64,000 nucleotides of DNA, from positions 248,001 to 312,000 of IMG/VR virus record IMGVR_UViG_3300032770_000001. One strand, written 5' to 3'. Positions 22,365 to 42,590 of this stretch are shown one piece after another. The stretch's first letter is position 1. The number at the start of each line of letters is the position of its first letter. Made by a program: the position numbers and the translations under genes. Under the pieces are notes generated by a model. That model saw only the letters and a program-made list of their open reading frames with translations. It ran no database searches and was not told the origin of the DNA.

Positions 22365-22396
22365 TTGACAGTTTTCCGACTTTCTGGTATTAGTAT
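22365..22396 (+). promoter_or_regulatory. sigma70-like promoter of tRNA array 1
   Basis: TTGACA 22365-22370, then TGGTATTAGTAT; nearly the same element precedes array 2. Confidence 0.75.
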
Positions 22397-22418
22397 AGTA
22401 GTAGGAACACAAACTCGA

Positions 22419-22496
22419 ATGGTTCGCATACACGCATTATCGTCGTCCTCAAGTAGCTCCCGTAGCGGGAGCGGCGGCGTTGGTGTGTGCTTGTAA
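22419..22496 (+). CDS. attenuator leader peptide 1 (MVRIHALSSSSSSSRSGSGGVGVCL)
   Basis: 25-codon ORF with ATA, TTA and the run TCG TCG TCC TCA AGT AGC TCC; overlaps alternative hairpins; matches downstream tRNAs. Confidence 0.85.
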   Translation: MVRIHALSSSSSSSRSGSGGVGVCL

Positions 22497-22532
22497 ACAC
22501 TTGAAAACAAGCAAGTAAGAAACACCGATGAA

Positions 22533-22566
22533 GCCGCCTAGAAACTTGGGCGGCATTTGTGTTTTT
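22533..22566 (+). terminator. attenuator terminator of tRNA array 1
   Basis: GCCGCCTAG-AAAC-TTGGGCGGC followed by ATTTGTGTTTTT. Confidence 0.8.
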
Positions 22567-22602
22567 AGGGTAGTTTAATGGTATAGCTGGTATTGATATA
22601 CC

Positions 22603-22965
22603 ATGGAGTGCCAATATCACAGATGCGGTAAGGAACTCATCGGCAGGCAGACGAAGTTCTGCTCTCCGAACTGTAAGAACAAAAACAATGTTCACCTTAG
22701 CCGTAGGCGGATGAAGCGTCGAGCAGTCGATTATCTCGGCGGAAAGTGTGTTGGGTGTGGGTATTCCAGATGTCTGGATGCCTTGGAATTCCACCACAAC
22801 TGTGATGAAAAAGAGACTGAAGTTTCAAAGATGATCGCCAATAACAGACCTTGGGAGGTCATCTTACAAGAATTGAAAAAGTGTGAGCTTAGGTGCGCCA
22901 ATTGCCACGCTGAGTATCATACATTAGGTGAGTTGGGAGAGAGGCTTATCCCGCTCGGTTGCTAA
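22603..22965 (+). CDS. HNH endonuclease (free-standing homing type)
   Basis: GGKCVGCGYSRCLDALEFHH...ELKKCELRCANCHAEYH; stop lies in the tRNA-Ser(GCT) anticodon loop. Confidence 0.85.
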   Translation: MECQYHRCGKELIGRQTKFCSPNCKNKNNVHLSRRRMKRRAVDYLGGKCVGCGYSRCLDALEFHHNCDEKETEVSKMIANNRPWEVILQELKKCELRCANCHAEYHTLGELGERLIPLGC

Positions 22966-23018
22966 CCGAGAGTCCCCCGCGAGGGGGACCGCAAGTTCGA
23001 ATCTTGCACTCACCGCCA
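22927..23018 (+). tRNA. tRNA-Ser(GCT)
   Basis: GGTGAGT/ACTCACC-G-CCA; CTCGG-TTGCTAA-CCGAG; long V arm. Confidence 0.95.
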
Positions 23019-23031
23019 AGTTTTGAAGTTT

Positions 23032-23121
23032 GGTGAGTTGGGAGAGTGGTTTAATCCGCCACGTTGGAAGCGTGGAGCACCCGTAAGGGTGCCGCAAGTT
23101 CGAATCTTGCACTCACCGCCA
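23032..23121 (+). tRNA. tRNA-Ser(GGA)
   Basis: CCACG-TTGGAAG-CGTGG; long V arm; GCCA end. Confidence 0.95.
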
Positions 23122-23135
23122 AATTTTTGAAGTAC

Positions 23136-23232
23136 GGTGGGGTTGGTACATGTGGCTTAGGTCCGCTCGTCTTGAAAACGAGTATACTTCAGAGATGGAG
23201 TATTGCCAGTTCAACTCTGGCTCCCACCGCCA
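23136..23232 (+). tRNA. tRNA-Ser(TGA)
   Basis: CTCGT-CTTGAAA-ACGAG; long V arm; atypical D arm. Confidence 0.9.
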
Positions 23233-23237
23233 AGTTT

Positions 23238-23333
23238 GGAGAGGTTGGTACATGTGGCAAGTCCGCTCGCCTCGAAAGCGAGTCACGGGGTTAATCACCC
23301 CGTGTGCAGGTTCGACTCCTGTCCTCTCCGCCA
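23238..23333 (+). tRNA. tRNA-Ser(CGA)
   Basis: CTCGC-CTCGAAA-GCGAG; long V arm; GCCA end. Confidence 0.92.
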
Positions 23334-23341
23334 TTTTACGT

Positions 23342-23419
23342 GCGCACGTGAAGGGAATTGGCATACCTTTCCCACTTAAAACGGGAAGCTTGTGGGTTCA
23401 ACTCCCACCGTGCGCACCA
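23342..23419 (+). tRNA. tRNA-Leu(TAA), short variable loop
   Basis: GCGCACG/CGTGCGC-A-CCA; loop CTTAAAA. Confidence 0.85.
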
Positions 23420-23424
23420 AGTTT

Positions 23425-23519
23425 GGGGGAGAGCACTGGCTGTGCGGCTGGGCCTTATAAACCCGGAGTAGCTCCTGATTAGAGCAGACGGTGGGGTTCG
23501 AATCCCTACTCCCCTACCA
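23425..23519 (+). tRNA. atypical tRNA-Ile(TAT)
   Basis: GGGGGAG/CTCCCCT-A-CCA; loop CTTATAA; 5-nt D loop; long V arm. Confidence 0.75.
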
Positions 23520-23549
23520 ATTTCTTCCTTCCTGTAGTATCATTCCAGC

Positions 23550-24056
23550 ATGGAACTCACCGACCGCGAATACTATCGAGCGCACATGGCGGAATATGCC
23601 AAAGACACGATGGTTCTGTCTTTCACGAAAACCAATCATCCCAGTTATCAGGCGATTCTTTCAATGGGCTCCCTTGCAGTTCCATTCTTACTTGAAGACG
23701 TGCAGTCACAGCACCCAGATGGATCATGGACGCCGGGAGAGCGGCAGTTCTCTTACTGGGGCGCAACTTCGTTGCTCTGGCAAATCACGGCAAAGTCAAT
23801 TAACACACCGCCTGCTCCAATTCTGCCGGAGAAGGATCGTGGTCGGCTGGCTCCGATTCGCAAGTTGTGGGTGGACTGGGGGATCGCGAATGGCTACCTA
23901 ACGCCGAATGACCCCAAGATTCCTCTTCGTTTCAATCAGGTTCACCGCTTTGTGCCGAAGCGGTTCTTCGGGCTCCGCAATTACATCTGGCGTCTGACCA
24001 CGCTGCCGAACAAGCATCGCATGAAACATTCATGGGACTACTGGAGAGCGATTTAA
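23550..24056 (+). CDS. hypothetical protein
   Basis: 168-aa ORF directly after a TG-TAGTAT element. Confidence 0.65.
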   Translation: MELTDREYYRAHMAEYAKDTMVLSFTKTNHPSYQAILSMGSLAVPFLLEDVQSQHPDGSWTPGERQFSYWGATSLLWQITAKSINTPPAPILPEKDRGRLAPIRKLWVDWGIANGYLTPNDPKIPLRFNQVHRFVPKRFFGLRNYIWRLTTLPNKHRMKHSWDYWRAI

Positions 24057-25186
24057 TGGGTAACTTCAAGCCGTTCAAGATTCTTTTCTCCGGGATGGGT
24101 ATCATTTTTCTTCTCATCCTTGGCTACCTCTTCCTGCACTGGGTCGGCGTACACGTCAGCTTCGTTGAGAGGCCGATTTCCGACAGCGACTTCAAGCAGT
24201 GGGTAATAGTCCTCCTCGTCGTCATCGCCTGCAAGAGCGGCGGCGATTGTAACTGCAACTGCAAGAAGGGCTGATATGGCGCTCCATCTATACGAGACCA
24301 ACGAGGGTTACATCTGCGACCACGGCAAGCCGGGATCGATGATGCTGGCTTCGGTCCCATTCATTGCTCACTGCGAAGAGTGCATCCGCAAGGCATTTGC
24401 TGAAGCTTTAGAGCGGACGTTGCGGGAAAACGGCTTCTCAACCCCTTAACTATAGGGGGTACTTTTCATGATCGCTGCTCTTTTGCTCTACTTTATCTCG
24501 CTGGCAATGCTCGGATTCACCGTGGGCTGTGGTGTTTATGCCTACAAAAAGTCCACCACCTACAACCAGTTCATGAATGAACATCCGATTTTGGGTTGGA
24601 CGGCTACGATCACGACAGCCGGACTGATTCTGTATGGAGAATTCCTGTTCCTTCTCTTGACGGTCGCCACGATCCTCGTTATGCTTGGACTAACCAATCT
24701 CGCAGTTCAGTAATAGGAGATCGAATGCCAGCAGCAACGAAGGATCACCGTAGCAAGAAGAACGCTCAGTCCCACGAGTCGCACCTTCGTCGGAAGCGTG
24801 AACTCAATGCCGCCAATACTACGGCGATTCAGTTCCAGCGCATCTATCGCATCAACTGTCTCAAGCAGCGCAAGGCAGAAGGTCGCCTGACCGAGAAGAA
24901 CGAAAAAGAGATCGTCTCCCTCGGCATCACTACGGAAGTGCATCTCAAGAATGGCATCTGAACTGGCAGTAATGCGGTTGGATCGCCTCCTCGATACTGA
25001 GGAGGGACGGCGGCTCCTGACTGATGCCGTGATGGAAATCATGCGGACACGCGCAACAGTCGATGTCGGGGCGGTTGCGGCGGATTTAGCTCCGATGCTG
25101 GATGCGCAGAAACTATCCTTCCTCGTGGAAGTGTTGCAGGAAGCCGCTCAACGTTCCGGAATCGCCATTACCCTCCCGAATCAAGC

Positions 25187-25501
25187 ATGACCACCGTCGT
25201 CCACGTCCGAAAATGCGATCCGCCTTTCGTCCAATTTACGTCCAATTTCGTCTACATCGGACGAGACTTTGACGGGTTCAAAGATGAGGGTTTTGGAAAT
25301 CCTTTCCATTTGGGTAAAGACGGGAACCGAAAAGAGGTATTAAGCAAATATAGGGCGTATGCCATTCACCGAATGCAGCACGACCCGGAGTTCTGGGCGC
25401 GAGTCAAGAACCTCAAGGACAAGACCCTCGGTTGCTGGTGTAAGCCTTATGATTGTCATGGAGATATTTTAGCGGAGTTGGCCTATGCGCTTTGGGTGTG
25501 A
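25187..25501 (+). CDS. DUF4326 family protein
   Basis: VYIGR...FGNPF...LKDKTLGCWCKPYDCHGDILAELA. Confidence 0.88.
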   Translation: MTTVVHVRKCDPPFVQFTSNFVYIGRDFDGFKDEGFGNPFHLGKDGNRKEVLSKYRAYAIHRMQHDPEFWARVKNLKDKTLGCWCKPYDCHGDILAELAYALWV

Positions 25502-25650
25502 ACCGGGTGATGGAAGCATTCATATTATCCTAGAAAATGGGGAAAAACTCCCCCCTCAGTGGAACGTTCCCGGCGTCTCCGTCATGGAAGAAGTCGCCCC
25601 GATTTGCGGCGGCACGCAATACCGGATGATTAAGCAGGAGGACGAAATCC

Positions 25651-26748
25651 TTGCAACGACGTAATTTTCTTCGCGGTCTACTTCTCGCTCCGCTTGCCGG
25701 ACTCTTCCCCACGTTCACGTGGGCTGAGGTCTGGAGCAAGTTCACTAACTGGGTTCCGGTACGATCACTTTCCAAAACTGAGCAACAATCTGAAATGCTC
25801 GGTAAGCTACTCAAGACCGCTGGAGGTCGGCAATTGCTTGCCGCATCTATCGGACCATCGATCCGCCGTCGTCGCGATTACACCAGTCTTATCCGCAAAG
25901 CGTTTCACACCCAAAATGATCCTGTCATTCGCAATGTGACAGAACAGGATTTGTACGTTGTTGGTGAAGAGGGCGGCGATATTATCCGGGTGAGCAACCC
26001 CAAGATAATCAATTTCCCGACGTTCCGCATCGTAAGCAACCCGATGATCCCGTACAGCGATGTCACCGGCAAGCGGTTCGACCTCGTCGCTCGTTGCCTC
26101 AACCTGTCCAAAGCAGAGATAGGTGCTTGCGAAGAGGGGTACATGTTCGCCTTAATGAACGCTGCCGCCGAGGGAGCAAACGCCGGGGGTGCGGGGAATC
26201 CCGATCTCCAGTATGAAGAGAGTCTCGAATTCCTCGAACCGATGAAAGCGCAATTCGCCAAACAGGGCGTCAAAGAGATCAACTTTGCGTTTGTCCATCC
26301 TCGCGATTTCGTCACCTTACTCAAGAACCAGACGTTTATGAATCACTTTGACCGGGAGACCAAACGTAGTTTCCTCAAAGCTGGCGTGATGGGTTACTAC
26401 CAGTTGGCAGATAAAGGCGCAGTCACTTTCATTCAGAACCGTAAGGTCACATACGGATACATCTACATCACAGGCAACACTCCGGCGACCGAAACAGAAC
26501 CAGCCGTTCACACTGGTTATGTCGTCGATCACGTTCCTCTGACCGTGCAATCGACAGATCGTCTTGATCTTGAACAGATCGGTTTCACGATCAGCGAAAA
26601 GGTCGGTTTCGCTTTGAATCCCATCGCCGTTCAACGTGTGAAGATTGCAACAGACAAACCTGTTGTTGAGCCCGTGGATGAAGGTGATGATTTAGACAAG
26701 ATTATCGACAAAACGGGCATCTACCCGTGGGCTGAAGTCAAAGCTTAA
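25651..26748 (+). CDS. major-capsid-protein-like paralogue with twin-arginine signal
   Basis: AGGAGG RBS; MQRRNFLRGLLLAPLAG...TWA; body (GRQLLAASI..RRRRDYTSLIRKAF, YVVGEEG, FRIVSNP, RFDLVAR) resembles large-phage HK97-fold capsid proteins, from recall. Confidence 0.65.
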   Translation: MQRRNFLRGLLLAPLAGLFPTFTWAEVWSKFTNWVPVRSLSKTEQQSEMLGKLLKTAGGRQLLAASIGPSIRRRRDYTSLIRKAFHTQNDPVIRNVTEQDLYVVGEEGGDIIRVSNPKIINFPTFRIVSNPMIPYSDVTGKRFDLVARCLNLSKAEIGACEEGYMFALMNAAAEGANAGGAGNPDLQYEESLEFLEPMKAQFAKQGVKEINFAFVHPRDFVTLLKNQTFMNHFDRETKRSFLKAGVMGYYQLADKGAVTFIQNRKVTYGYIYITGNTPATETEPAVHTGYVVDHVPLTVQSTDRLDLEQIGFTISEKVGFALNPIAVQRVKIATDKPVVEPVDEGDDLDKIIDKTGIYPWAEVKA

Positions 26749-26766
26749 CGGCTACCTGTATCTCTG

Positions 26767-26979
26767 ATGAGGGGGTACAGGACCGTGTCAATCATTCGTA
26801 TCGACAATCCAAAAATCTTCATCGGGCTCAGTCCCGATGAAGCCTCTAGCCAGATCAAATCGTGCGAGTACGACGTTCGCATAATCAACAAACTGGTGCC
26901 CTATAAGCCGGACTACGATCCGCTGCGTATCTGCCTCATTGTGGAGAAAGATAAGGTGATCGATGCTTTTGTCGGCTAA
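26767..26979 (+). CDS. peptidase inhibitor I78/potato-inhibitor-I-like small protein
   Basis: FIGLSPDEA...VRII...DYDPLRICLIVEKDKVIDAFVG. Confidence 0.55.
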   Translation: MRGYRTVSIIRIDNPKIFIGLSPDEASSQIKSCEYDVRIINKLVPYKPDYDPLRICLIVEKDKVIDAFVG

Positions 26980-27006
26980 ACTGTTGATTTTTAAGCCATA
27001 AAATCC

Positions 27007-27036
27007 TAACCAAAATCGTCTCCAAGCTGGTAGGAT
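27007..27036 (+). promoter_or_regulatory. phage promoter (probably leaderless)
   Basis: TAACCA-N18-TAGGAT with CTGG extension. Confidence 0.65.
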
Positions 27037-27698
27037 ATGGGCATGAATGCTTATGTTCTCACCCAGATGGAGATGACGGGCGATGGTGAACAAGCTCACG
27101 TCGTCACGCGCAACCGCAGCGTTACGTTTGATGTCGAGAAGGCTCAGGCATGGGCGAATCAAGGTGTCGATTTCGATTACGAAACCTTCGACATCACCAC
27201 CGAGTCTATCGTCGCCGACGCGACCGGGCAACTCTCTCAAGCCATCGGTGAGGTCAAACAGCAAGCCATCGACTTGGGACAGGCATTCGATGAGGTAAAT
27301 CGTTTGATCCGGGAGTTGAAATGAGAACTGCGTGGGCAATCCTCTTCACCTTCGGAATTTTCCTCGCCGTCGCTGCCGTCCTGTTCATGATGGGCTTCGG
27401 CGCTTCCCGGTTGCCGGGCCCAGTCGGTGACCCCTTCTATTTCCGGCGTCGTAAAGCCGGGAATATTCTCTTCGGCATCGGCCTCATCTGCATCACGATC
27501 TCAGCGGCAATCATTTCTTTCGGGGTGCCGCGATGAGTTTCGCACGCCAAAAACTTCTTGAAGTCAAGAAAGAGTTCGGCGAACTCGTGAAGGTACTTCA
27601 CGACGATTGCGTATGCGTGCGTCCAGAATGCGGATGCGAAACATCTCGTCCGATTAACCGTATCCATGATCTGATCCAAGAACTTGAGGGAGAAATCC

Positions 27699-28442
27699 AT
27701 GAGTAAACGCAAAGGAAACGTCCACCCGATTCTCGATCAGTTCGGTGAGAAACTTTCGCCGTTCTCATTCGACCGCCTGTACGGTGAGGAGAAGTATCGC
27801 CTCCAGAACATGGTGCTCAACATGGCGGATTTCCCGGCTGAGTACGAAGAGGGTGTCGATCAGGTGTTCTCGATCTATGCCGACCGTGCGCACACACAAT
27901 GGTGGGCTGCCGCAAGTCTGGTGGAAAGTACGTCATCCGGCGATGCGTGGTTTAACGGCGTCTCGCATGACGACTTCCTGAAATTCGCAGGCAAGCTGTT
28001 CGGCGCTCTGAACAACCACCGCAAGTGCACCGGGGACGCTCTCACCTACAAAGCGTACCAGTACGCAAACGAATACGAACTCCGCTACAAGGAACTCTAC
28101 GGCTCCATCGCCCTATCGGGTATGTGGCGTGGGCGCGAGGACGAGTTTGAAGGTGATGAGTACCGCCGTTTCCTCGACCTGAGCATTGCGACTGACAAGT
28201 GGGCACAGAAGCAGGCGATGGAGGAAGTCGTACCATTGCCCATCACCGGGGCACTGATGATCCGCATGACCAACGTATCGAGCGGCTATCCCTGCCCGGT
28301 GCTCATCGGCGTGATCCAGAAATCGAAGCTGCCGCGATACAATGGCGGCGGGCCGCTGATCGAATACCCGAAGATGCGCTACGGTATGGACATCTACGGT
28401 GGGCATCTGGACGAGTTAGAAGGTTTCTACCGGAGGGGTTAA
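27699..28442 (+). CDS. hypothetical protein
   Basis: GAGGGAG RBS; 247-aa ORF. Confidence 0.7.
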   Translation: MSKRKGNVHPILDQFGEKLSPFSFDRLYGEEKYRLQNMVLNMADFPAEYEEGVDQVFSIYADRAHTQWWAAASLVESTSSGDAWFNGVSHDDFLKFAGKLFGALNNHRKCTGDALTYKAYQYANEYELRYKELYGSIALSGMWRGREDEFEGDEYRRFLDLSIATDKWAQKQAMEEVVPLPITGALMIRMTNVSSGYPCPVLIGVIQKSKLPRYNGGGPLIEYPKMRYGMDIYGGHLDELEGFYRRG

Positions 28443-30870: not shown

Positions 30871-31041
30871 TGCCGGACCGGAAGTACGAGCCTCGCGATT
30901 TCGTGATTGTCCGTGTCTCCAAGAAGCGGTGGAGAATTGCAGTCCTCCGGCTATCCGGGGAGAAGCTGCAAGCGGACTACATCACCGGGAAGTTCAAGTC
31001 GCAGGCCCGTGCTGCCGAAGCACTGAAAACGTGGAACAACA

Positions 31042-34753: not shown

Positions 34754-35520
34754 TGTGCTTTTTCGCGATGAAGCCGGAACCGAAGGGCGATGATCCCATC
34801 CCCTACACCTATTGTCCGCACATCATGACTGAGTTTGAAGGACGGCCTGTGCTCTGGTCGCGGACTGGCACCATCGGCATGTGCTCGTGCTGCTGGCATT
34901 ACATGTGCGGCAAGTGCTACAGCCATCACCCGAAGCCGGAGAACGCGCCTCACGGGATTCTCCCTTGCCATTGGGATACGCGACAGTTTATATTCATGGT
35001 TGAACGCTTCGGTGATCTACCTCAGAGCGAACAAAGCAGAATTTGGCGAGACCCAGTTGCACGGGCAAAGTTTTACCACGAGACGCCGATAAGGGGCTGA
35101 TTATGAATTCTTTTGGTCTTAGATTCATTGCTTTTGTGTTCGTGTTAGCCGTGCTGTTCGGTGCCATCAACGCCAATCGACTTTATGAGTCGCACGTTAC
35201 GACGACAGCGACGGGACGTGAACCCGTCCAGCCAGAGCCATACAAAGCGGTGTCCTCGATCTACGTTTGGCATCAACCCCTGAAGGACATGCCCGTGGGC
35301 GCACAGGGCTGTTACGAGGTTTTCTACACGTCAAGCGGAGAGCCGTTTGTTTGGGCGTGGGAAGATTCAGACCCGATCTGCCACACTATCGTCCGGCGTG
35401 ATAAGGACGGCTGGCACGCCACACAGCAGGGACCGACAGACCATGAGCAAATCACCGGGTATGTGTCGGTCAGACAGGCTGAGGGCATCCCGATCTCGTA
35501 AAAAATTTTTTCGATAGTTG

Positions 35521-35553
35521 TTGACAAACCGACTACCGATATGGTATTAGTAG
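35521..35553 (+). promoter_or_regulatory. sigma70-like promoter of tRNA array 2
   Basis: TTGACA 35521-35526, then TGGTATTAGTAG; AT-rich sequence upstream. Confidence 0.75.
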
Positions 35554-35572
35554 TAGTGAGCTTGAGAAATTC

Positions 35573-35668
35573 ATGACCTTCATGACAGCCAAATCGAGCC
35601 GAAAGCATCAGCGCCGGAATAATCGCTGGTTCGGCACGGGTCTGTTCTCTGAAGGGTGGGGCGCTTAA
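35573..35668 (+). CDS. attenuator leader peptide 2 (MTFMTAKSSRKHQRRNNRWFGTGLFSEGWGA)
   Basis: control run AAA..CGA AAG CAT CAG CGC CGG AAT AAT CGC TGG matches downstream Lys/Arg/His/Gln/Asn/Trp tRNAs; alternative start at ATG 35582. Confidence 0.82.
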   Translation: MTFMTAKSSRKHQRRNNRWFGTGLFSEGWGA

Positions 35669-35695
35669 AGCCTAGAAACCCAAGAGATTAACGAG

Positions 35696-35729
35696 ACCCG
35701 GAGCCAAAAGGCTTCGGGTTTTTTGTTTT
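35696..35729 (+). terminator. attenuator terminator of tRNA array 2
   Basis: ACCCGGAGCC-AAAA-GGCTTCGGGT followed by TTTTTGTTTT. Confidence 0.9.
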
Positions 35730-35746
35730 GGTCTTTGAAAATTTAT

Positions 35747-35825
35747 AGGGGCGTAAGACTATCTGGCGTCGTCGGCTGGTCTCCAAAACCATGCAGTGGG
35801 GGTTCAAATCCCCCCGCCCCTGCCA
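35747..35825 (+). tRNA. tRNA-Trp(CCA)
   Basis: AGGGGCG/CGCCCCT-G-CCA; loop CTCCAAA. Confidence 0.9.
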
Positions 35826-35826
35826 T

Positions 35827-35914
35827 TGGGCGATGGTGTAATTGGCAACACACTTGGCTCTGAACCAAGGGACTGATAAAGCTTGTGGAGGTTCGAGTCC
35901 TCCTCGCCCAGCCA
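35827..35914 (+). tRNA. tRNA-Gln(CTG) with extended variable region
   Basis: TGGGCGA/TCGCCCA-G-CCA; CTTGG-CTCTGAA-CCAAG. Confidence 0.88.
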
Positions 35915-36028
35915 ATATTGCAATAGGACTGGATACTTGCCGAGAAAGGGTACGGCGTTCGCGTCGGAGAGTATTTCGGGTGTCGAGAAGCCAGCCTTAC
36001 GGCTACAATCCGTGAAAGCCGTTTCGAT

Positions 36029-36105
36029 GGTGGGCGTAGTTCAACTGGTAGAACGCAGGATTGTGGCTCCTGTAGTTGCGGGTTCGAATCCCGTCGCCCA
36101 CCCCA
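36029..36105 (+). tRNA. tRNA-His(GTG), encoded G-1
   Basis: CAGGA-TTGTGGC-TCCTG; G-1:C73. Confidence 0.95.
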
Positions 36106-36116
36106 AGTTTAGATGT

Positions 36117-36192
36117 GGTGTCATTAGCCAAGAGGTAAGGCAAGAGGTTGTGGCCCTCTCATGCGTCGGTTCGATCCCGACATGACACCCCA
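36117..36192 (+). tRNA. tRNA-His(GTG) second copy, encoded G-1
   Basis: AGAGG-TTGTGGC-CCTCT; G-1:C73. Confidence 0.92.
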
Positions 36193-36230
36193 AGTTTTGA
36201 GGAGATAGCAGATTGGATCGACATAGTAAC

Positions 36231-36306
36231 GGGCTTATAGCTCAGAAGGAAGAGCACTGGAATCCGAATCCAGAGGTCGGCGGTTCGAGTCCGCCTAAGC
36301 CCTCCA
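36231..36306 (+). tRNA. tRNA-Arg(CCG)
   Basis: CTGGA-ATCCGAA-TCCAG; GGGCTTA/TAAGCCC. Confidence 0.92.
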
Positions 36307-36317
36307 GAGTTTTGCAA

Positions 36318-36464
36318 GTGATCGCTGGCAGTCCGATTGATTTTGACTGCCCTCTTTGCGGCAAGCCGAAAGGCGTACCCTGCAAAGTCAGGATCGTGGA
36401 AGAGCAGATCGTAGAGATCGACTTCCATCTTGACCGCAAAAAGTTGACAAGATTGTCCGCATAG
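36318..36464 (+). CDS. small zinc-finger protein ending inside tRNA-Arg(ACG)
   Basis: CPLC..PC..H; the TAG stop is tRNA positions 8-10. Confidence 0.5.
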   Translation: MIAGSPIDFDCPLCGKPKGVPCKVRIVEEQIVEIDFHLDRKKLTRLSA

Positions 36465-36531
36465 CTCAACTGGATAGAGCGCGTGCCTACGAAGCATGAG
36501 GTTGGGGGTTCGAGTCCCTCTGTGGACACCA
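36455..36531 (+). tRNA. tRNA-Arg(ACG)
   Basis: CGTGC-CTACGAA-GCATG; canonical D and T arms. Confidence 0.95.
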
Positions 36532-36536
36532 TATCA

Positions 36537-36611
36537 GGGGTGTATTGTCGGTTCGAATCCGGCTGGTCGTGGGTTTCACGATCATAGGCTCAAATGGTCA
36601 ACCAACGCCCC
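36537..36611 (+). ncRNA. circularly permuted tRNA-like RNA (YrlA/Y-RNA-like module)
   Basis: closing stem GGGGTGT/ACGCCCC; T arm GTCGG-TTCGAAT-CCGGC; loop-closed acceptor stem TGGTCGT/ACGATCA; D-like arm. Confidence 0.7.
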
Positions 36612-36622
36612 GTCGTTTTTAT

Positions 36623-36709
36623 GCCTCCGTGTCGGCAACTGGATGCCACCCTCGCTACGAACGAGGAGCCCGAAAGGGAATGCAGGTTCGAGTCCTGTCG
36701 GGGGTTCCA
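36623..36709 (+). tRNA. atypical tRNA-Arg(ACG) with long variable arm
   Basis: CCTCG-CTACGAA-CGAGG; V arm CCC-GAAA-GGG; TCCA end. Confidence 0.82.
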
Positions 36710-36920
36710 TTTTGAAGTATTGAAGAGTATGAGCAGACTTGAAGAGTTGTACGCGCAGTTGGAAAAGACGGAGCCCGGATCGCCGGAATCGAAAACAATA
36801 GCGGAAAAGATTCTGGAAGAGGTCTTCGGCGGCGTCCCGGAAGGGAAAGAAGGCGCGACTGTTCATGCTCCGGGTTGTAAGTGTGGTTGGTGTTTGATGG
36901 GAGATACAAAGTTTTAACAC

Positions 36921-37007
36921 TGGGATGTAGACCGTAATTGGTAGCGGGCGTGGCTGTTAACCACGTGCAGAAATGCCTTGTAGGTTCGAGCCCTACCGTC
37001 CCAGCCA
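36921..37007 (+). tRNA. tRNA-Asn(GTT) with long variable arm
   Basis: CGTGG-CTGTTAA-CCACG; V arm GCA-GAAA-TGC. Confidence 0.88.
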
Positions 37008-37013
37008 GATTTT

Positions 37014-37089
37014 TCCGGGGTAGCTCAGCGGTAGTAGCGTCCGGCTGTTAACCGGATGGTCGCAGGTTCGATCCCTGCCCCCGGAGCCA
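37014..37089 (+). tRNA. tRNA-Asn(GTT)
   Basis: TCCGG-CTGTTAA-CCGGA; canonical. Confidence 0.95.
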
Positions 37090-37346
37090 AGATGTAAACG
37101 TGCGGTTGGGGAGCGGAGCCCTCGGCGAGGGTGGAAAGCCTAAACTCCGCTCCCCGCTGTGGGGGCTGGGTCGCCTGTATAGCGCCACTCCTCATGCTTA
37201 GGGCACGGGATGTCGTTTTCGAAGACTTCTAGGATTGGAATTGGGATGTGGCACTCGCAAAGCAGGATCGCAAAGTAGCGTTCCTCACCGTCTTCGGTTT
37301 TTGCGTAGGCACCACAGACCTGCATACTTAAAGAATACCAAAGTTT

Positions 37347-37423
37347 GGGTGCGTCGTATAGCGGCTGATTATATTCCCCTCTTAAGGGACTTGACGTTGG
37401 TTCAAATCCAACCGCACCCACCA
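37347..37423 (+). tRNA. tRNA-Lys(CTT)
   Basis: GGGTGCG/CGCACCC-A-CCA; loop CTCTTAA. Confidence 0.9.
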
Positions 37424-37443
37424 AGTTTGTGGTATTGTGTAGT

Positions 37444-37605
37444 ATGGCTTTTACCAAGGAACAACTCGAAGCACTGGCTGCTCCATTGCGGCATGTGATT
37501 TTCGACAAGGACACCATCGCGTACCTTGAATGGGTTAGAGATAACCCAAACGAGTGGGCACAGATGATGCAGCAGCGCGATAAAGAACGACAATTGGGGG
37601 GTTAG
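37444..37605 (+). CDS. 53-aa hypothetical protein ending inside tRNA-Lys(CTT)
   Basis: MAFTKEQLEALAAPLRH...QLGG; the TAG stop is tRNA positions 8-10; TGG-TATTGT element just upstream. Confidence 0.55.
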   Translation: MAFTKEQLEALAAPLRHVIFDKDTIAYLEWVRDNPNEWAQMMQQRDKERQLGG

Positions 37606-37671
37606 CTCAACTGGCAGAGCAGGGGCCTCTTAAGCCTCAGGTTGCGGGTTCGACTCCCGTGCCCCTCACCA
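37596..37671 (+). tRNA. tRNA-Lys(CTT) second copy
   Basis: GGGGC-CTCTTAA-GCCTC; canonical D and T arms. Confidence 0.93.
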
Positions 37672-37941
37672 AATCTAGTTAGGAGTTTGCTATGTTCGGT
37701 CCAGCGGAAGATGTACCGGGCGAATGCAATGCTCGGTTGGAGATCGGCGACGATTATGGCGACAATGTCGCCACGATGCGTTGCCAGCGGGAGCCGGGTC
37801 ATCCGGATCGGCACCGCGAAGAATACGTGGACGTGGACAAAGGTGTTGTCACCGTCCAGTGGGGCAATCAGCCCGAATAAGATTGGAACGTGTACACGTT
37901 CCATCGTCCTCGGCTCGGCGACGGTCGGGTAGCGGGGACAG

Positions 37942-38012
37942 CGTACCGTAGCTTAGTTGGCAGAGCGTCCGCCTTGGAAGCGGAAGACGCAGGTTCGAAT
38001 CCTGTCGGCTTT
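37942..38012 (+). pseudogene. tRNA-Pro(TGG) pseudogene
   Basis: intact D, anticodon (TCCGC-CTTGGAA-GCGGA) and T arms, but the acceptor stem pairs only 3 bp and there is no CCA. Confidence 0.7.
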
Positions 38013-38320
38013 GTGTTGGCTCCGGCAGTACCTCGACGGAGGGAATAGTCCGGAGCCGCTTACGTTTATGATACCAGCGTGTGTGACATGCACCGATTGC
38101 GGGTTCGCACCATACGGGATGTACATGGTGACGAACGAGCTTTGGGCAGCGGCGGGACTGAAGCGTGACGATAACGTTTGTCCTCTCTGTCTGGAGAAGC
38201 GTATCGGGCGACCGCTGACACAAGAGGATTTTACGCCGTTCCCGTGCAATAGGATCATCCGAGCCCACGGGGTTCAGGCGCACATTGATTTTTGGAAGCC
38301 TTTAATAGAGGAAGATTATC

Positions 38321-38866
38321 GTGAACGACACATTGGTACTTGACATGAACTGGCAGCCTGTCGGCTTCTGCTCTTGGCAGAACGCCGTGAAGCTCTGGTA
38401 CGAAGGGCGTGCTCAGGTCATCAAGGAAGACGAGGCGGGCCGCGTGCTGCGTTCTCCATCTTTCACGATGGGTATGCCGCGAGTCATTGTCGTTCGTAAC
38501 GCTTGGACTCGTCGTCGCCGTCAGGCTGTGCCGTTCAGCCGTCGCAACATTGCTGTTCGTGACGACTCGACGTGCCAGTATTGCGGCAAGATACTGCACA
38601 CCCACCAGTACACGCTGGATCACGTACTGCCGCGTTCGCAGGGTGGTGTGTCGTCTTGGACGAACCTTGTTCTGGCTTGCATCCGTTGCAACAAGTACAA
38701 GGCCGGACAGACGCCGGAGCAGGCAGGCATGACTCTGTTGAAGAAGCCTGTCGAACCGAAGTCCGATGATCCGAAGTACAACTTCAAGCTGCACATCCGC
38801 CACGTCCGTGCCGAGTGGAAGGAATGGTCAAGCTGGCTCTACTGGAACATCGAATTGGATCGTTAA
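38321..38866 (+). CDS. HNH endonuclease (McrA-like)
   Basis: SRRNIAVRDDSTCQYCG...TLDHVLPRSQGG..SWTNLVLACIRCNKYK. Confidence 0.92.
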   Translation: MNDTLVLDMNWQPVGFCSWQNAVKLWYEGRAQVIKEDEAGRVLRSPSFTMGMPRVIVVRNAWTRRRRQAVPFSRRNIAVRDDSTCQYCGKILHTHQYTLDHVLPRSQGGVSSWTNLVLACIRCNKYKAGQTPEQAGMTLLKKPVEPKSDDPKYNFKLHIRHVRAEWKEWSSWLYWNIELDR

Positions 38867-39474
38867 TGCTGCACACCGTCTACAAAACGGTTTGCCTGCT
38901 AAACGGCAAATTCTATGTTGGGTATCACAAAACTAAAGACCCGTCCGATGGATACCTCGGCTCCGGCACGTACATCCGCCGAGCAGTTCGTAAACACGGA
39001 CGGGTAAATTTTAGAAAAGAAGTGCTTTTCATCTTTCCGGATGTTGAATCCGCGATGGAGAAGGAAAAAGAACTGGTTGAGTTGCATCGCACTAACCCGC
39101 TTTGCATGAATCTGAAAGACGGTGGGCTCAACGGGAAGATGCCGCCTCATGTCGGGCAAGCAGTAGCGGCAGCCAACCGAAAACGGGTTGGATGGCATCA
39201 TACAGAGGATGCCCGAAACCGGATGCGAGCGTCCGGCAAAAAGGTGAAGACGCCACGAGGCGGTTGGAACAAAGGACGAGCGTGGTCGGCTGACGTGCGG
39301 GAAAAAATCAGTGAGGCGACTGGTGATCGTTCCGGTACAAGGAATCCGAATTTCGGAAATAAAGGCTTGAAGAACCCGCTGTTTGGGACGATCCGGTCGC
39401 AGGAAACACGAGATCGCATAGCCGCTGCGCAGCGTGCGCGGTGGGCGCGGAGGAAAAATGGAATTAACGGGTAA
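38866..39474 (+). CDS. GIY-YIG (Seg-like) homing endonuclease with NUMOD3-like repeats
   Basis: TVYKTVCLLNGKFYVGYHKT...DGYLGSG; HHTEDARNRM and RSQETRDRIA repeats. Confidence 0.88.
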   Translation: MLHTVYKTVCLLNGKFYVGYHKTKDPSDGYLGSGTYIRRAVRKHGRVNFRKEVLFIFPDVESAMEKEKELVELHRTNPLCMNLKDGGLNGKMPPHVGQAVAAANRKRVGWHHTEDARNRMRASGKKVKTPRGGWNKGRAWSADVREKISEATGDRSGTRNPNFGNKGLKNPLFGTIRSQETRDRIAAAQRARWARRKNGING

Positions 39475-39812
39475 GTATCGCATAATTCGAGAGAATGCCG
39501 TGGTAGGTGAGGCTGAGGTAGGACCTGATGGTTCAATCACTGCAATCTACCGACCTTCTGAGAAGTGTGTGTATCATGGGAAGGGCAGCGTTCAATACGG
39601 CGGCGTACAACCCGGTCCTGTAAATGGTACGGTGAATTTCGCCATCCAATTCGGAAGTCAACTTCCTGTGGGCGGTCCGGGAACAAAATTCGGATTCTCG
39701 TTTAACGGCAACAAAGCGGCTGATGGGTCGCTGGCGTTGCAGGGGCACCTGAGCCCGGTTGCCCCCGCGTTCCGGCAAGTTTATAAGTTTTCGGCTGAAA
39801 AAGAGGCGACCG

Positions 39813-40220
39813 ATGGGTAACGATTTCATTTGGGCACCGAAAACCGGACTTAGCAGTCTGTTCACCTTAGAGTGTTTCTATTGCGGCATCGAGCTTAAAA
39901 CTGATGATTTGAGCAAGAAATACGCAAATGATGGGGCTACGGTGGACCACAAAGACCCCGTGAGCAAATTCGGGTCTGAGTTGCCAAGCAATAAAGTGGA
40001 TGCCTGTCGAAAATGTAACTCGGAGAAGAATGATCGTAGTCTCGAAGACTACCGTCAATGGCTCATTGTTCAAAATGAATTGAACACGGAAAAACCCGCA
40101 ATGATTATGGGGCTTCTGGGTTGCTGGACTAGCGGTCAGTTGCGTCGTAATCCAAGCCCAATGGCTGTTCTATTCGGGATGGAGTGGTTGTTCCCCGGAG
40201 AACTGAAAGGGAAAGTATGA
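39813..40220 (+). CDS. HNH endonuclease
   Basis: CFYCG...ATVDHKDPVSKFG...NKVDACRKCNSEK. Confidence 0.85.
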   Translation: MGNDFIWAPKTGLSSLFTLECFYCGIELKTDDLSKKYANDGATVDHKDPVSKFGSELPSNKVDACRKCNSEKNDRSLEDYRQWLIVQNELNTEKPAMIMGLLGCWTSGQLRRNPSPMAVLFGMEWLFPGELKGKV

Positions 40221-41047
40221 ACGTCAAGCGTTGTTGTGGGTGTGGGCTTGTAACATCTCGGATCGGACCGAACAGCTTTCGAACAACGATCAACCCACTT
40301 CAGCTTGTGGGAATTACCGACGAGCATTGGGCTTCGGGCACCTGTCCTGTTTGTTATACCCCCACATTGAAAGACGGAGCAGGAATAACGATTCGTTTGG
40401 TCGGCAACTCCCTTTATGAGGTTGTGGGACAAAATAAAACTCTTGATCGAAATGAACTCGTTACGTACCTGTGGGAGCAAGGTCTGAGTGCGCGAGAAAC
40501 GGCTACCGTTTCTGGTATGATCCACGGGTATCACGAAGCAACGTTTTAACGGTATTCCCGCACGGTAACATTCACCGTGTGATCGTGCGGGAAACCTGAT
40601 TTGTTACCGGACGGGAATATGCCACACGTGCAGGGTTGCTTGTTTTGTTTGCTGGAAAAGCTAACTGTGATCTTCGGCTTCGCGGCAATAGGGCTGGTGT
40701 GCATCTTCGGGATGCTGGTGGACGCGGTTCATTTTCGCTTCCTGATGGCAGCCAAGGATTTGATCGGTTATTTCATCGCTATAGTAGGGATCAGCGTGGT
40801 ACCGAAAATGATAGATCGGTTTCACGGTTTACTGGATCAGTGGGGATTATGAAGGTCAACCATCAACGCGGGTATCGGGACGAGCGGGATTACAATGCAA
40901 TCCTGCGTGGTGGTTGCTGGACATGCGGAAAGCATGGAGCCGCGAGAAACAGACGCGGTCGCAAGAAGTTTTTCAACTCTCGTGAGCGATTCCGGACGCA
41001 CATGGAAACTCGGAAGCTTGCGAAAGATGGTGTGGTAGAGTAGGATT

Positions 41048-41123
41048 GACCCCGTAGCTCAGATGGAAGAGCGGTGCGGTCCTAACGCACAGGTCGAGAG
41101 TTCGAATCTCTCCGGGGTCTCCA
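41048..41123 (+). tRNA. tRNA-Arg(CCT)
   Basis: GTGCG-GTCCTAA-CGCAC; GACCCCG/CGGGGTC. Confidence 0.92.
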
Positions 41124-41290
41124 AGTTATGAACTGGATGTGGCTTTGCAGGATTGGTTTTCACGATTGGGTGTATTCAGTGTTTCGTCCTGTTGCACCTG
41201 AATGTGGTGGTGCCGTACCTTGCTACTACGAGAAACGCTGTGAGCGTTGCGGTCTCGAAGAGAAGGGCGAGGGTTGGTTTTAGGGGGCGT

Positions 41291-41509
41291 ATGCCTACTT
41301 TGGTGATTGAGTTCAATCGCAAGATGAATGACATCCTCCAGCAGATGGCGGATGAGAAGGGCACGACCAAGGTAGATATCATCCGGCGTGCCGTGGCGTT
41401 GTACAAGTACCTGACTAACGAACTAGCCTGTCGCCGTAAGGGTGACACGCCGAAGAAGTTGGTCATTCGCCGGGGCGATCTGATCTTGAAAGAAGTCGTA
41501 TTGCCGTGA
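41291..41509 (+). CDS. ribbon-helix-helix (CopG-like) DNA-binding protein
   Basis: LVIEF...LQQMADEKGTTKVDIIRRAVALY. Confidence 0.75.
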   Translation: MPTLVIEFNRKMNDILQQMADEKGTTKVDIIRRAVALYKYLTNELACRRKGDTPKKLVIRRGDLILKEVVLP

Positions 41510-42025
41510 GTCTTGAGTGCAGTGAGTGCGAACGCGATCTGCGCGGTCCTCATGCTGAGGATTGCTCAAGATACACGCCGCCAAGGGCTTGCAAGTGGTG
41601 CCCTCATGATGAATACGACCATGATGAGGAAGATTGGTGCTGGAAATGCGGCACCTTCGGCCCGTGTAGATTCTTTGAACCAGCTTCCTGAACCCTTAAA
41701 TAGGGGGCATGATGAAGCTGACGGAGTACGTGATTATCGCGGAACCGTTCGATACCTCAGACCTGACCTCGACGTTCTATGAGTCGGGCATAGACGAGGA
41801 AGACGCTCTGAAACAGTTCCGCAAGAAGCACCCAACGATGCGGGTGCAGGAAGTTCGGGAGCGGTAAATGGGCAAAAGGAAGCCGCAACCAAAGATCAAG
41901 TTTGTGTGCAAGTTGTGCGGTAAAGATGCGCCGAAGGATGAAGCTCAGTCCAATGAAAATTGGACAGTAGTTAGTACGACCTGTCCATGCGGCGGCACCA
42001 TGAAGATTGTTGTAGAATAAAGTTT

Positions 42026-42099
42026 AGCCCTGTCGTTCAACGGTAGGACATCTGCCTCTGGAGCAGAGTATCGGGGTTCGAATCCCTGTGGGGCTGCCA
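42026..42099 (+). tRNA. tRNA-Gln(CTG)
   Basis: TCTGC-CTCTGGA-GCAGA; GCCA end. Confidence 0.9.
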
Positions 42100-42100
42100 A

Positions 42101-42221
42101 GTGTACTCATGGGGGAAGCGAGTCGCCCCGTCCTCATGGGCATTAGAGGCGGCAGTTATCGCTCACTGTCGGAGCGGCAAAACGTCAGGATGTAAACGTG
42201 ACAGCCCGGAGAGACGGGCAC
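42101..42221 (+). ncRNA. structured RNA, possibly c4-antisense-like
   Basis: several hairpins ending GTGACAGCCCGGAGAGACGGGCAC, which resembles the c4 RNA 3' end as I recall it. Confidence 0.35.
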
Positions 42222-42344
42222 TTAAAGAGACCATGAACACTGCAATCAATCTCGTCGCAATGGCCTGCTTCGTAGCGGGTATGGTCGTATTCTATCTTGC
42301 ACTGACCTCCCTTCCCCTCAGACGAAAACGTTAACCACAAACGT

Positions 42345-42428
42345 GGGGGCGTAGTCGGGGGGCTCTTCTAAAGCCTTAGCCGTAAACCGGAACTGCGAAT
42401 GCGAGTTCGAATCTCGCCGCCCCTTCCA
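42345..42428 (+). tRNA. D-armless tRNA-Arg(TCT)-like RNA
   Basis: GGGGGCG/CGCCCCT-T-CCA; GGGCT-CTTCTAA-AGCCT; canonical T arm; only 7-8 nt in place of the D arm. Confidence 0.7.
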
Positions 42429-42439
42429 TATTTTTCTTT

Positions 42440-42514
42440 GGGAGTATCGTCTAATGTCAAGACCCCCGCCTTTTAAGCGGGCCGATCTCGGTTCGAATCC
42501 GGGTGCTCCCACCA
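42440..42514 (+). tRNA. tRNA-Lys(TTT)
   Basis: CCCGC-CTTTTAA-GCGGG; ACCA end. Confidence 0.92.
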
Positions 42515-42516
42515 AT

Positions 42517-42590
42517 GGGGGCGTAGCTCAGCGTAGAGCAGCGGGCTTTTAACCCGAAGCGCGTGGAATCAATCCCCACCGCCCCCACCA
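42517..42590 (+). tRNA. tRNA-Lys(TTT) with non-canonical T loop
   Basis: loop CTTTTAA; T loop reads ATCAATC; GGGGGCG/CGCCCCC-A-CCA. Confidence 0.78.

Follow-up and report, generated by a model that had tools for sequence, protein, structure and literature searches.

Leader-peptide attenuators are well known from amino-acid biosynthesis operons (trpL, hisL, pheL, leuL, thrL, and ilvL/ivbL), in which a promoter-proximal short ORF with a cluster of control codons is followed by protector, antiterminator, and terminator hairpins, and the position of the ribosome chooses between them. Leaders that respond to several amino acids already exist, since thr senses Thr and Ile, and ilv senses Ile, Leu, and Val. 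The pheM leader of pheST applies the principle to an aminoacyl-tRNA synthetase operon, and so to a component of the decoding machinery rather than to a biosynthetic pathway. T-box riboswitches likewise sense the state of a specific tRNA and control read-through of a terminator upstream of genes of the same amino-acid system. Clustered tRNA genes interspersed with homing endonucleases are known from T4, T5, mycobacteriophages, and jumbo phages, where they are thought to compensate for codon usage or for loss of host tRNA.

Here, we analyzed a 64,000-nt stretch of a giant-phage genome (IMG/VR record IMGVR_UViG_3300032770_000001, positions 248,001 to 312,000; hereafter, the window), in which an earlier note had proposed, from the sequence alone, that two tRNA arrays are controlled by codon-matched leader-peptide attenuators. 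We conclude that the observation is real and far beyond chance, and that the phage probably makes these tRNAs only when decoding runs short. We found no published description of such a use of this classic bacterial switch, either in literature searches or in the phiCbK and Tunturi genome papers, neither of which mentions leaders or attenuation.

Two tRNA arrays and their matched leader ORFs

All of the window features described below lie on the plus strand. In array 1 (22927-23519), ARAGORN and Rfam identified Ser-GCT, Ser-GGA, Ser-TGA, Ser-CGA, and Leu-TAA at 22927-23419. Both tools missed a further tRNA at 23426-23519, with anticodon TAT and a long variable arm, which the earlier note had listed as an Ile tRNA. 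This tRNA is real, and its orthologue in a relative is called tRNA-Ile(TAT). The proximal part of array 2 (35747-37671) comprises Trp-CCA (found at 35747 by Rfam only), Gln-CTG, His-GTG x2, Arg-CCG, Arg-ACG x2, Asn-GTT x2, and Lys-CTT x2. Additional tRNAs, namely Arg-CCT, Gln-CTG, a tRNA-like element with anticodon TCT (42345-42424), and Lys-TTT x2, are scattered among small genes further downstream (41048-42590) and have no leader of their own.

Each array is preceded by the same type of promoter. Promoter P1 (22365-22395) has a -35 TTGACA (22365-22370), a 17-nt spacer, and an extended -10 TGgTATTAG (22385-22393), whilst promoter P2 (35521-35552) has a -35 TTGACA (35521-35526), an 18-nt spacer, and the extended -10 TGgTATTAG (35542-35550). 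TTGACA followed, after 14 or 15 nt, by the 11-mer TGGTATTAGTA occurs exactly twice in the window, at these two sites, and only twice in the 455,708-bp parent contig. Apart from the promoter and a shared 10-mer, GCCTAGAAAC, the two leaders are unalignable, which slightly corrects the earlier claim that they are unrelated in sequence.

Leader ORF 1 (22419-22496) comprises 25 codons plus a stop. Its control codons are ATA (22428), TTA (22437), and seven Ser codons (22440-22460) that use TCG, TCC, TCA, AGT, and AGC. The longest run of cognate codons is eight (Leu-TTA plus seven Ser, with Ile-ATA just upstream), against a background of 9.9%, and covers all six tRNAs of array 1. Leader ORF 2 (35573-35668) comprises 31 codons plus a stop, with AAA at 35591 and a control run at 35600-35629 of CGA, AAG, CAT, CAG, CGC, CGG, AAT, AAT, CGC, and TGG. 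This run of ten cognate codons, against a background of 20.3%, covers all seven tRNA species at the start of array 2. None of 100,000 random gene segments reached either run, and against the other array the leaders score only 3/25 and 3/31 cognate codons.

The Shine-Dalgarno-like elements of these leaders are weaker or further away than those of many genes of the same phage, and that the ORFs are translated is an inference. In addition, an HNH homing-endonuclease ORF (22603-22965; identified by PHROG hits) sits between attenuator 1 and its tRNAs, overlapping tRNA-Ser by 39 nt, and a promoter-like near-copy of the -10 motif (22588), carried by the HNH gene, could bypass the control. The HNH ORF is a secondary insertion, as it is absent from a diverged lineage (lineage C, below), where the terminator lies about 60 nt before the first tRNA.

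Predicted alternative structures

The leaders fold more stably than shuffled sequence (z = -5.05 and -2.83). The first-ranked and third-ranked terminator-like sites of the region follow the ORFs, at 35693-35722 and 22533-22554, respectively. Terminator 1 (22533-22566) has a 9-bp GC-rich stem, a 4-nt loop, and a T-rich tail (-14.4 kcal/mol), and terminator 2 (35693-35733) has a 13-bp stem, an AAAA loop, and a T-rich tail (-21.4 kcal/mol).

In the minimum-free-energy fold of leader 1, a protector hairpin (22431-22489) is formed by pairing of the control-codon strand (22431-22447) with 22473-22489, with an inner hairpin at 22456-22472, and an equivalent helix exists in lineage C. In leader 2, the control codons themselves form a hairpin (35607-35630; AUCAGCG/CGCUGGU) that is conserved in all three lineages examined and may be an RNA polymerase pause or protector hairpin. 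In transcripts truncated before the 3' arm of the terminator, the 5' arm is sequestered by a segment of the ORF, unless a ribosome sits on the last codons or the stop codon. In leader 1, this antiterminator (22473-22538) pairs the ORF 3' segment 22473-22494 with 22507-22538, which includes the terminator 5' arm GCCGCC. In leader 2, the antiterminator (35633-35705) pairs 35633-35650 with 35683-35705, which includes the terminator 5' arm. In both cases, the stop codon lies in the apical part.

However, equilibrium folds of the full leaders always keep the terminator, so that the switch rests on a kinetic, co-transcriptional argument. Moreover, in truncated folds the antiterminator forms even without a ribosome, and the protector hairpin of leader 2 does not fully cover the antiterminator strand. 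Folding also suggests that stalls at the last control codons (CGC and TGG of leader 2, and the late AGC codons of leader 1) would cover the antiterminator strand and would probably favor termination rather than read-through. The earlier proposal that stalling at any control codon would favor read-through is therefore too strong.

Conservation in diverged relatives

Every sequence-level prediction of the attenuator reading held, including the sequence-level tests that the earlier note had set for its refutation. Although the flanking proteins are only 57-67% identical, diverged relatives (designated L plus a number) keep both ORFs in frame. Leader 2 is present in three lineages (A, B, and C), being conserved in frame in lineages B (L063) and C (L097, L074, and L068), and leader 1 is present in two, being conserved in frame in lineage C (L113 to L115). 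ORF lengths differ only by whole codons (31, 29, and 39 aa; 25 and 23 aa), and the stop codon stays in the same structural position. Leader 1 retains the codon set ATA, TTA, TCG, TCC, TCA, AGT, and AGC, but in a different order. Between lineages A and C, blastn aligns only the tRNAs and the leader core. As an exception to the match, lineage C keeps a CAG codon, but no Gln tRNA is visible in the part of its array that was recovered.

Importantly, in every lineage a segment inside the ORF, downstream of the control codons, pairs with the 5' arm of the terminator and changes together with it. In leader 2, CGGGUCU/AGACCCG in lineages A and B becomes AGUGGGCUU/AGGCCCACU in lineage C, and a compensatory change in terminator 2 is seen in L063.

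Recurrence in other phages

The same design appears in cultured phages of Acidobacteria and Caulobacter. Tunturiibacter phage Tunturi_5 has three arrays and three different matched leaders, in which cognate codons with the leader's own array are 14/32, 24/37, and 34/49, against 2 to 12 with the other arrays, and which hit 8/9, 14/15, and 15/15 tRNA species. Four Dolichocephalovirinae phages of Caulobacter/Brevundimonas (phiCbK, CcrRogue, CcrBL9, and Bajun) have two leaders each, and every leader hits 7/8 up to 12/12 of its own array's species. Phages with differently composed arrays have correspondingly different leaders. A Trp codon appears in the Pro/Lys/Leu/Ser-type leader only in CcrBL9, where Trp-CCA is part of that array. 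In the Caulobacter leaders, GGACGGGCC/GGCCCGTCC in CcrBL9 (Bajun GGCCCGTCT) becomes GGGCGGGCC/GGCCCGCC in Rogue and phiCbK, which changes the peptide but keeps the pairing. In contrast, T5, RSP15, and Variovorax V45v66 gave no such ORF, so the scan does not produce the pattern by itself.

We considered the possibility that the ORFs are ordinary small phage proteins or chance ORFs whose resemblance to the arrays reflects compositional bias, given that phiCbK gp335, CcrRogue gp349, CcrBL9 gp149, BAJUN_02440, and Tunturi_5 ORF308 are annotated as CDS, several of them as hypothetical proteins. This appears very unlikely. Own-array scores far exceed other-array scores in 15 of 15 leader-array pairs, random gene segments do not reach the runs seen in the window, and peptide order and sequence drift while the codon set and the RNA pairing are conserved. 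The ORFs also lie between a promoter and a terminator, directly before the tRNAs, with the reservations about array 1 noted above and about the Pro/Lys/Leu/Ser-type leaders noted below.

It is also conceivable that the ORFs act through another translation-coupled route, such as Rho-dependent polarity, protection or processing of the tRNA precursor, or a timer that shuts the arrays off once phage tRNAs have accumulated. The weak SD elements would be compatible with this idea, as would the observation that the Caulobacter-phage leaders start about 7 nt after a -10-like element, and so may be leaderless. Furthermore, our simple fold did not find an antiterminator inside the ORF of the Pro/Lys/Leu/Ser-type leaders of CcrBL9 and Bajun, and for leaders of this type only weaker terminator-like sites, or none, were found. 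However, a strong intrinsic terminator follows the ORF in all five peat-phage leaders, all three Tunturi_5 leaders, and the three Val/Ile/Gln-type leaders covered by our scan (CcrBL9, Rogue, and Bajun), and a copy of the terminator's 3' arm lies inside the ORF and co-varies with the 5' arm. Rho-dependent polarity would, in addition, give the opposite sign, as a stall would produce less tRNA. We therefore regard such a route as improbable.

Proposed mechanism

The most likely explanation, to which we assign a probability of roughly 0.8 on sequence evidence alone, is ribosome-mediated transcription attenuation acting as demand-driven control of tRNA supply. In this model, a host-type promoter starts a transcript whose first element is a short ORF that contains, closely packed, at least one codon for nearly every tRNA species encoded downstream. 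If those codons are decoded quickly, the ribosome runs on through the 3' part of the ORF to a stop codon that lies inside the antiterminator. That strand is then occluded, the terminator hairpin forms, and transcription ends before the tRNAs. If any of the early control codons is decoded slowly, because its charged tRNA is scarce, the ribosome stalls upstream, the ORF's 3' segment pairs with the terminator's 5' arm, and RNA polymerase reads through into the array. The new tRNAs would relieve the stall, resulting in a negative-feedback loop on decoding capacity with one input per tRNA species. The response of read-through to tRNA supply and the physiological trigger are inferred, and extra tRNA would not help against amino-acid starvation.

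The earlier note suggested that the attenuators sense tRNA-targeting host defenses, such that cleavage of host tRNAs by anticodon nucleases stalls the leader ribosome and switches on replacement tRNAs. This is a special case of the model above rather than an alternative mechanism, and it remains a tentative, purely inferred possibility. Array 2 groups Lys, Asn, Gln, His, Arg, and Trp, which may overlap the targets of anticodon nucleases and colicins, and a demand-driven design would suit a threat that is only sometimes present. Relatives and Tunturi_5 also carry tRNA repair or maturation genes near the arrays (PNKP plus an Rnl1-type ligase in the relative L058, and a tRNA nucleotidyltransferase and an RtcB-type ligase in Tunturi_5). 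However, nothing in the sequence ties the trigger to nucleases. Taken together, the Tunturi_5 leaders cover all twenty amino acids, which fits general decoding homeostasis, or compensation for host shut-off and codon-usage mismatch, better than a response to particular nucleases.

Comparison with known systems

In the sources we read, phage tRNA clusters carry only annotated promoters and terminators, with no mention of decoding-dependent control, and T5 shows promoters directly before its tRNAs and no matched leader. T-boxes bind uncharged tRNA directly, without translation, through one specifier codon, whereas here there is an ORF with many codons, and Rfam finds no T-box. The pheM leader has a single amino acid as input and a protein-coding operon as its target. 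We also examined the E. coli tRNA-Phe genes pheV and pheU, which do not have a leader; their promoters abut the tRNA. In comparison with the attenuators of amino-acid biosynthesis operons, the system described here is encoded by phages, no Rfam leader family matches it, the regulated genes are tRNAs rather than enzymes, and the product would directly relieve the stall. Instead of a run of codons for one to three amino acids, the leader samples up to 15 tRNA species and up to about 9 amino acids, with roughly one codon per isoacceptor.

The tRNA arrays and their upstream regions

The phage from which the window derives is represented by a 455,708 bp viral contig (IMGVR_UViG_3300032770_000001), together with a near-identical contig of 105 kb. 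It encodes rIIA/rIIB, an NAD-dependent ligase, and many homing endonucleases. No close relative was found among GenBank phages, where nucleotide searches returned only tRNA-sized hits and protein searches with rIIA, the ligase, and RlaP gave only distant hits. The head-protein-like ORF (25795-26745) has only four hits among GenBank phages, the best being the jumbo Tunturiibacter (Acidobacteriota) phage Tunturi_5 (42% identity), followed by a 485-kb uncultured phage and Bacillus phage G. This suggests a phage-G-like jumbo clade, and possibly an Acidobacteriota host.

ARAGORN and Rfam placed all of the tRNAs between 22.9 and 42.6 kb on the + strand. Array 1 comprises Ser-GCT, Ser-GGA, Ser-TGA, Ser-CGA, and Leu-TAA, and ends with a sixth tRNA of 94 nt (23426-23519), with anticodon TAT and a long, type-II-like variable arm, that was missed by both tools. 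Its orthologue in a relative (contig L113, 3160-3253) is called tRNA-Ile(TAT), although such an arm is unusual for tRNA-Ile, and its amino-acid identity is uncertain. Array 2 comprises Trp, Gln, His x2, Arg-CCG, Arg-ACG x2, Asn x2, and Lys-CTT x2, with Arg-CCT, Gln, and Lys-TTT x2 scattered further downstream. The proximal and distal tRNAs of array 2 are separated by a cluster of three homing-endonuclease genes (HNH, GIY-YIG/NUMOD3, HNH; 38345-40217). Three of the tRNAs (Gln, Arg-ACG, and Asn; 35827-35914, 36623-36709, and 36921-37007) are 87-88 nt long, and each lies close to a normal-length gene with the same anticodon (for Gln, the one at 42026). A further tRNA-like element with anticodon TCT and a long arm (42345-42424) scores below the Rfam threshold. 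The pairing of long and normal copies recurs in two diverged lineages, B and C, described below. In addition, a tRNA-like element with anticodon TGG (Pro) at 37946-38008 matches the tRNA model only at positions 5-66, and so lacks a proper acceptor stem. It is conserved in lineage B (contig L063, 5350-5412). No Pro codon occurs in the leader of array 2. A Pfam search of the ORFs between the arrays found nothing related to tRNA metabolism, only homing endonucleases.

Each array is preceded by TTGACA, then 14 or 15 nt, then TGGTATTAGTA, which reads as a -35 box, a 17- or 18-nt spacer, and an extended -10 box. The motif is exact only at these two places, both in the window and in the whole parent contig. 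It is followed, after 24 and 21 nt, respectively, by an ORF of 25 codons (leader 1, 22419-22496) or 31 codons (leader 2, 35573-35668), although the ribosome-binding sites are only moderate. The third-ranked and first-ranked terminator-like sites of the region follow leader 1 (22533-22554; -14.4 kcal/mol) and leader 2 (35693-35722; -21.4 kcal/mol), and the leaders fold much better than shuffled controls. The 10-mer GCCTAGAAAC occurs in both of these otherwise unalignable leaders, in the terminator loop of leader 1 (22536-22545) and just after the stop codon of leader 2 (35670-35679). Related ...GAAAC... strings occur in lineages B and C, but chance is not excluded.

An HNH endonuclease gene (22603-22965) is inserted between attenuator 1 and the first tRNA, and overlaps tRNA-Ser by 39 nt. 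Just upstream of its ATG lies TGGTATTGATA (22588), a two-mismatch copy of the -10 motif shared by the two array promoters, which could drive transcription that bypasses the attenuator. A possible split tRNA at 22568 looks instead like part of this insertion.

Leader codons and the tRNAs of each array

Leader 1 reads ATA, two other codons, then TTA, then seven Ser codons (TCG TCG TCC TCA AGT AGC TCC), such that every one of the six tRNAs of array 1 is sampled. Leader 2 contains ten consecutive codons (CGA AAG CAT CAG CGC CGG AAT AAT CGC TGG) that sample all seven proximal tRNA species of array 2, and an AAA three codons upstream matches the distal Lys-TTT. The background frequencies of cognate codons in the genes of the phage are 9.9% and 20.3%, respectively, and none of 100,000 random gene segments reached either the run of 8 or the run of 10 cognate codons. 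In contrast, each leader has only three codons cognate to the other array. Control codons are only slightly rarer than expected from phage gene usage. Preference for rare codons is therefore not the design principle; coverage of every tRNA species is.

Predicted alternative RNA structures

In the full-length fold, the control-codon strand of leader 1 pairs with the 3′ segment of the ORF to form a protector hairpin, and the terminator forms. Equilibrium folding of the full leader with a ribosome mask was uninformative, as it always kept the terminator. We therefore used folds truncated before the 3′ arm of the terminator, and folds of only the RNA 3′ of the ribosome. In the truncated transcripts, the same 3′ segment pairs with the 5′ arm of the terminator. 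In leader 1, the pairs are GGCGGC with GCCGCC, and GUUGGUGU with ACACCGAU, whilst in leader 2 they are CGGGUCU with AGACCCG, plus flanking helices. The stop codon lies in the apical part of this antiterminator. A ribosome on the early control codons leaves the antiterminator strand free, whereas a ribosome on the last codons, or at the stop, removes it. This is the logic of the classical attenuators, albeit with the reservations that the argument is kinetic, because equilibrium folds keep the terminator, and that stalls at the last control codons would probably not induce read-through. In these in silico folds, a mutually exclusive antiterminator was found in five leaders of the peat phages, three of Tunturi_5, and three Val/Ile/Gln-type Caulobacter-phage leaders, but it was not resolved for the Pro/Lys/Leu/Ser-type leaders.

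Leaders in diverged relatives

Exact-protein look-ups and one metagenome pattern scan recovered diverged orthologous loci from peat and soil assemblies, with conserved gene order and flanking proteins that are 57-67% identical. We refer to the window's phage as lineage A. Lineage B is contig L063, and lineage C is represented by contigs L097, L074, and L068 for array 2, and by L113 to L115 for array 1. Leader 2 is present in all three lineages, with ORFs of 31, 29, and 39 codons; all length differences are whole codons, and the core CAT CAG CGG AAT AAT CGC TGG is invariant. Leader 1 was found in two lineages. In lineage C it has 23 codons and carries the same codon set (ATA, TTA, TCG, TCC, TCA, AGT, AGC) in a different order. 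It also directly abuts the tRNAs, and the HNH gene in the window is therefore a later insertion. Between lineages A and C, blastn aligns only the tRNAs and the leader core.

As MAFFT misaligned the lineage C terminator, we described the helices lineage by lineage instead of counting alignment columns. The terminator of lineage C leader 2 is entirely different (GGCCCACU / AGUGGGCU), and the ORF-embedded strand has changed to match it (AGUGGGCUU). Lineage B shows a compensatory change in the terminator stem. Additionally, a 99.6%-identical variant (contig L071; Ga0335070_10376248) lacks about 400 bp (window 35091-35489) that encode the 132-aa gene upstream of the array 2 promoter, yet keeps the promoter, the leader, and the start of the array.

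Other searches for relatives gave little. In IMG/VR, the promoter pattern, two flanking proteins, and both leader patterns returned only the parent contig, its 105-kb twin, and chance hits without tRNAs, and the leader 1 pattern has no match in 185,579 reference genomes. The 168-aa gene downstream of array 1 has homologues in contigs L058 to L062, but none shows tRNAs in the recovered sequence. In L061 there are about 2.5 kb of protein-coding DNA upstream of the homologue and no tRNA, whilst L062 may simply begin downstream of the array. L058 carries a tRNA repair pair, a PNKP-like kinase/phosphatase and a T4 Rnl1-type RNA ligase (6769-8832), about 1 kb upstream of the homologue, with no tRNAs nearby.

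Leaders in other phages

To determine whether the design is more general, we wrote a simple scan for an ORF upstream of an array, scored by cognate-codon runs, and applied it to other phages. Tunturi_5 (PP885688.1) has three arrays and three leaders. Leader T1, whose array serves Leu, Cys, Tyr, and Ser, has 14/32 codons cognate to its own array (motif LCLSSYCLSSSLSLS), compared to 4 and 12 for the other arrays, and hits 8/9 tRNA species. Leader T2 (Asn, Gln, Gly, Thr, Pro, His, Ala, and Phe) has 24/37 cognate codons, including a run of 15, compared to 2 and 11, and hits 14/15 species. Leader T3, annotated as ORF308 (Trp, Asp, Met, Lys, Val, Arg, Glu, Ile, and Gly), has 34/49, compared to 4 and 10, and hits 15/15 species. 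Each Tunturi_5 leader is followed by a terminator whose 5′ arm pairs with a segment inside the ORF. The 3′ tails of leaders T1 (11682-11780 of the Tunturi_5 sequence) and T2 (19748-19861) lie in or near the antiterminator strand and are rich in codons cognate to the third array (for example, KVVKW, and DLR..RDADMI). Stalling there would favour termination, which hints at possible cross-talk or a hierarchy between the arrays.

In the Caulobacter/Brevundimonas phage subfamily Dolichocephalovirinae (phiCbK, CcrRogue, CcrBL9, and Bajun), two arrays each have a conserved leader. One type serves Val, Ile, Gln, Phe, Asn, and Arg (motif RQFVRQIQ). The other serves Pro, Lys, Leu, Ser, Thr, His, and Ala, and is annotated as phiCbK gp335, Rogue gp349, CcrBL9 gp149, and BAJUN_02440. 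Every one of these leaders hits 7/8 up to 12/12 of the tRNA species in its own array, and a Trp codon occurs in the second leader type only in CcrBL9, where Trp-CCA belongs to that array. The ORF copy of the 3′ arm of the terminator co-varies with the 5′ arm: a T:A pair in CcrBL9 and Bajun is a C:G pair in Rogue and phiCbK, which changes the peptide from RTG to RAG. The phiCbK record annotates predicted terminators at the sites equivalent to those in the window. In these phages, the leader ATG lies only about 7 nt after a -10-like element (about 4950-4990, about 4950-4992, and about 25870-25903 in the phage sequences L124, L125, and L120, respectively). The leader mRNAs may therefore be leaderless, as many Caulobacter mRNAs are known to be.

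Overall, own-array scores exceeded other-array scores in 15 of 15 leader-array pairs. In contrast, T5, Ralstonia phage RSP15, and Variovorax phage V45v66 showed nothing comparable. The design is therefore found in two deep phage lineages, a jumbo myovirus clade that includes the window's phage and Tunturi_5, and the phiCbK-like siphoviruses, but it is not universal.

Discussion

The observation made in the earlier note, that both arrays begin with a promoter, a short ORF, alternative hairpins, and a terminator, and that each leader contains codons for the amino acids of the tRNAs behind it, is confirmed. The interpretation of these elements as leader-peptide attenuators is supported as far as sequence analysis can go, and we place a probability of about 0.8 on a functional, decoding-dependent attenuator. 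The further suggestion in the note, that the arrays are switched on when host tRNAs are cut by anticodon nucleases, remains a tentative hypothesis.

Why phages carry tRNAs, and how they use them, is a long-standing question, for which the proposed answers include codon-usage compensation, loss of host tRNA, and evasion of anticodon nucleases. A leader that reads out each tRNA species of its array implies that expression is conditional on decoding failure. A broader, and rather speculative, possibility is that many large phages carry a programmable sensor of decoding capacity, in which each array is gated by a leader that samples every tRNA species in that array, so that the phage produces exactly the tRNAs the infected cell lacks at that moment. 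This would let it ride out host shut-off, codon mismatch in new hosts, and tRNA-cleaving immune systems. On this reading, demand-driven tRNA replacement would be a general counter-defence and host-range strategy, and the leaders a natural multi-input device for reading out tRNA availability. As the design is present in phiCbK-type phages of Caulobacter crescentus and in the cultured Tunturi_5, these ideas are open to standard genetics and sequencing methods. Several annotated “hypothetical proteins” (phiCbK gp335, CcrRogue gp349, CcrBL9 gp149, BAJUN_02440, and Tunturi_5 ORF308) can be re-annotated as leaders.

We found no description of leader-peptide control of tRNA genes in full-text searches, although the literature searched was incomplete and an earlier description cannot be excluded. 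Nor is it mentioned in the genome papers on Tunturi (PMC11924767) or phiCbK (PMC3556154), the latter of which does not discuss the terminators annotated before the phiCbK tRNA groups. Likewise, the T5 annotation does not describe its arrays as subject to any decoding-dependent control. Besides tRNAs, the Rfam search of 20000-46000 at E <= 1 gave only weak sub-threshold matches to unrelated families, none of which is a known leader, such as the His, Thr, Leu, or Trp leaders. There was also no match to the T-box riboswitch, which binds uncharged tRNA without translation, whereas the element described here is an ORF conserved in frame. The E. coli tRNA-Phe genes, pheV and pheU, have no leader. 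The mechanism class is that of the leader-peptide attenuator, from which the present elements differ in their phage setting, in having far more inputs than any classical example, and in their target, which is tRNA genes rather than the amino-acid biosynthesis or synthetase genes that form the classical scope of the family. Attenuation would apply to the tRNAs themselves, creating the shortest possible feedback loop, because the product relieves the stall.
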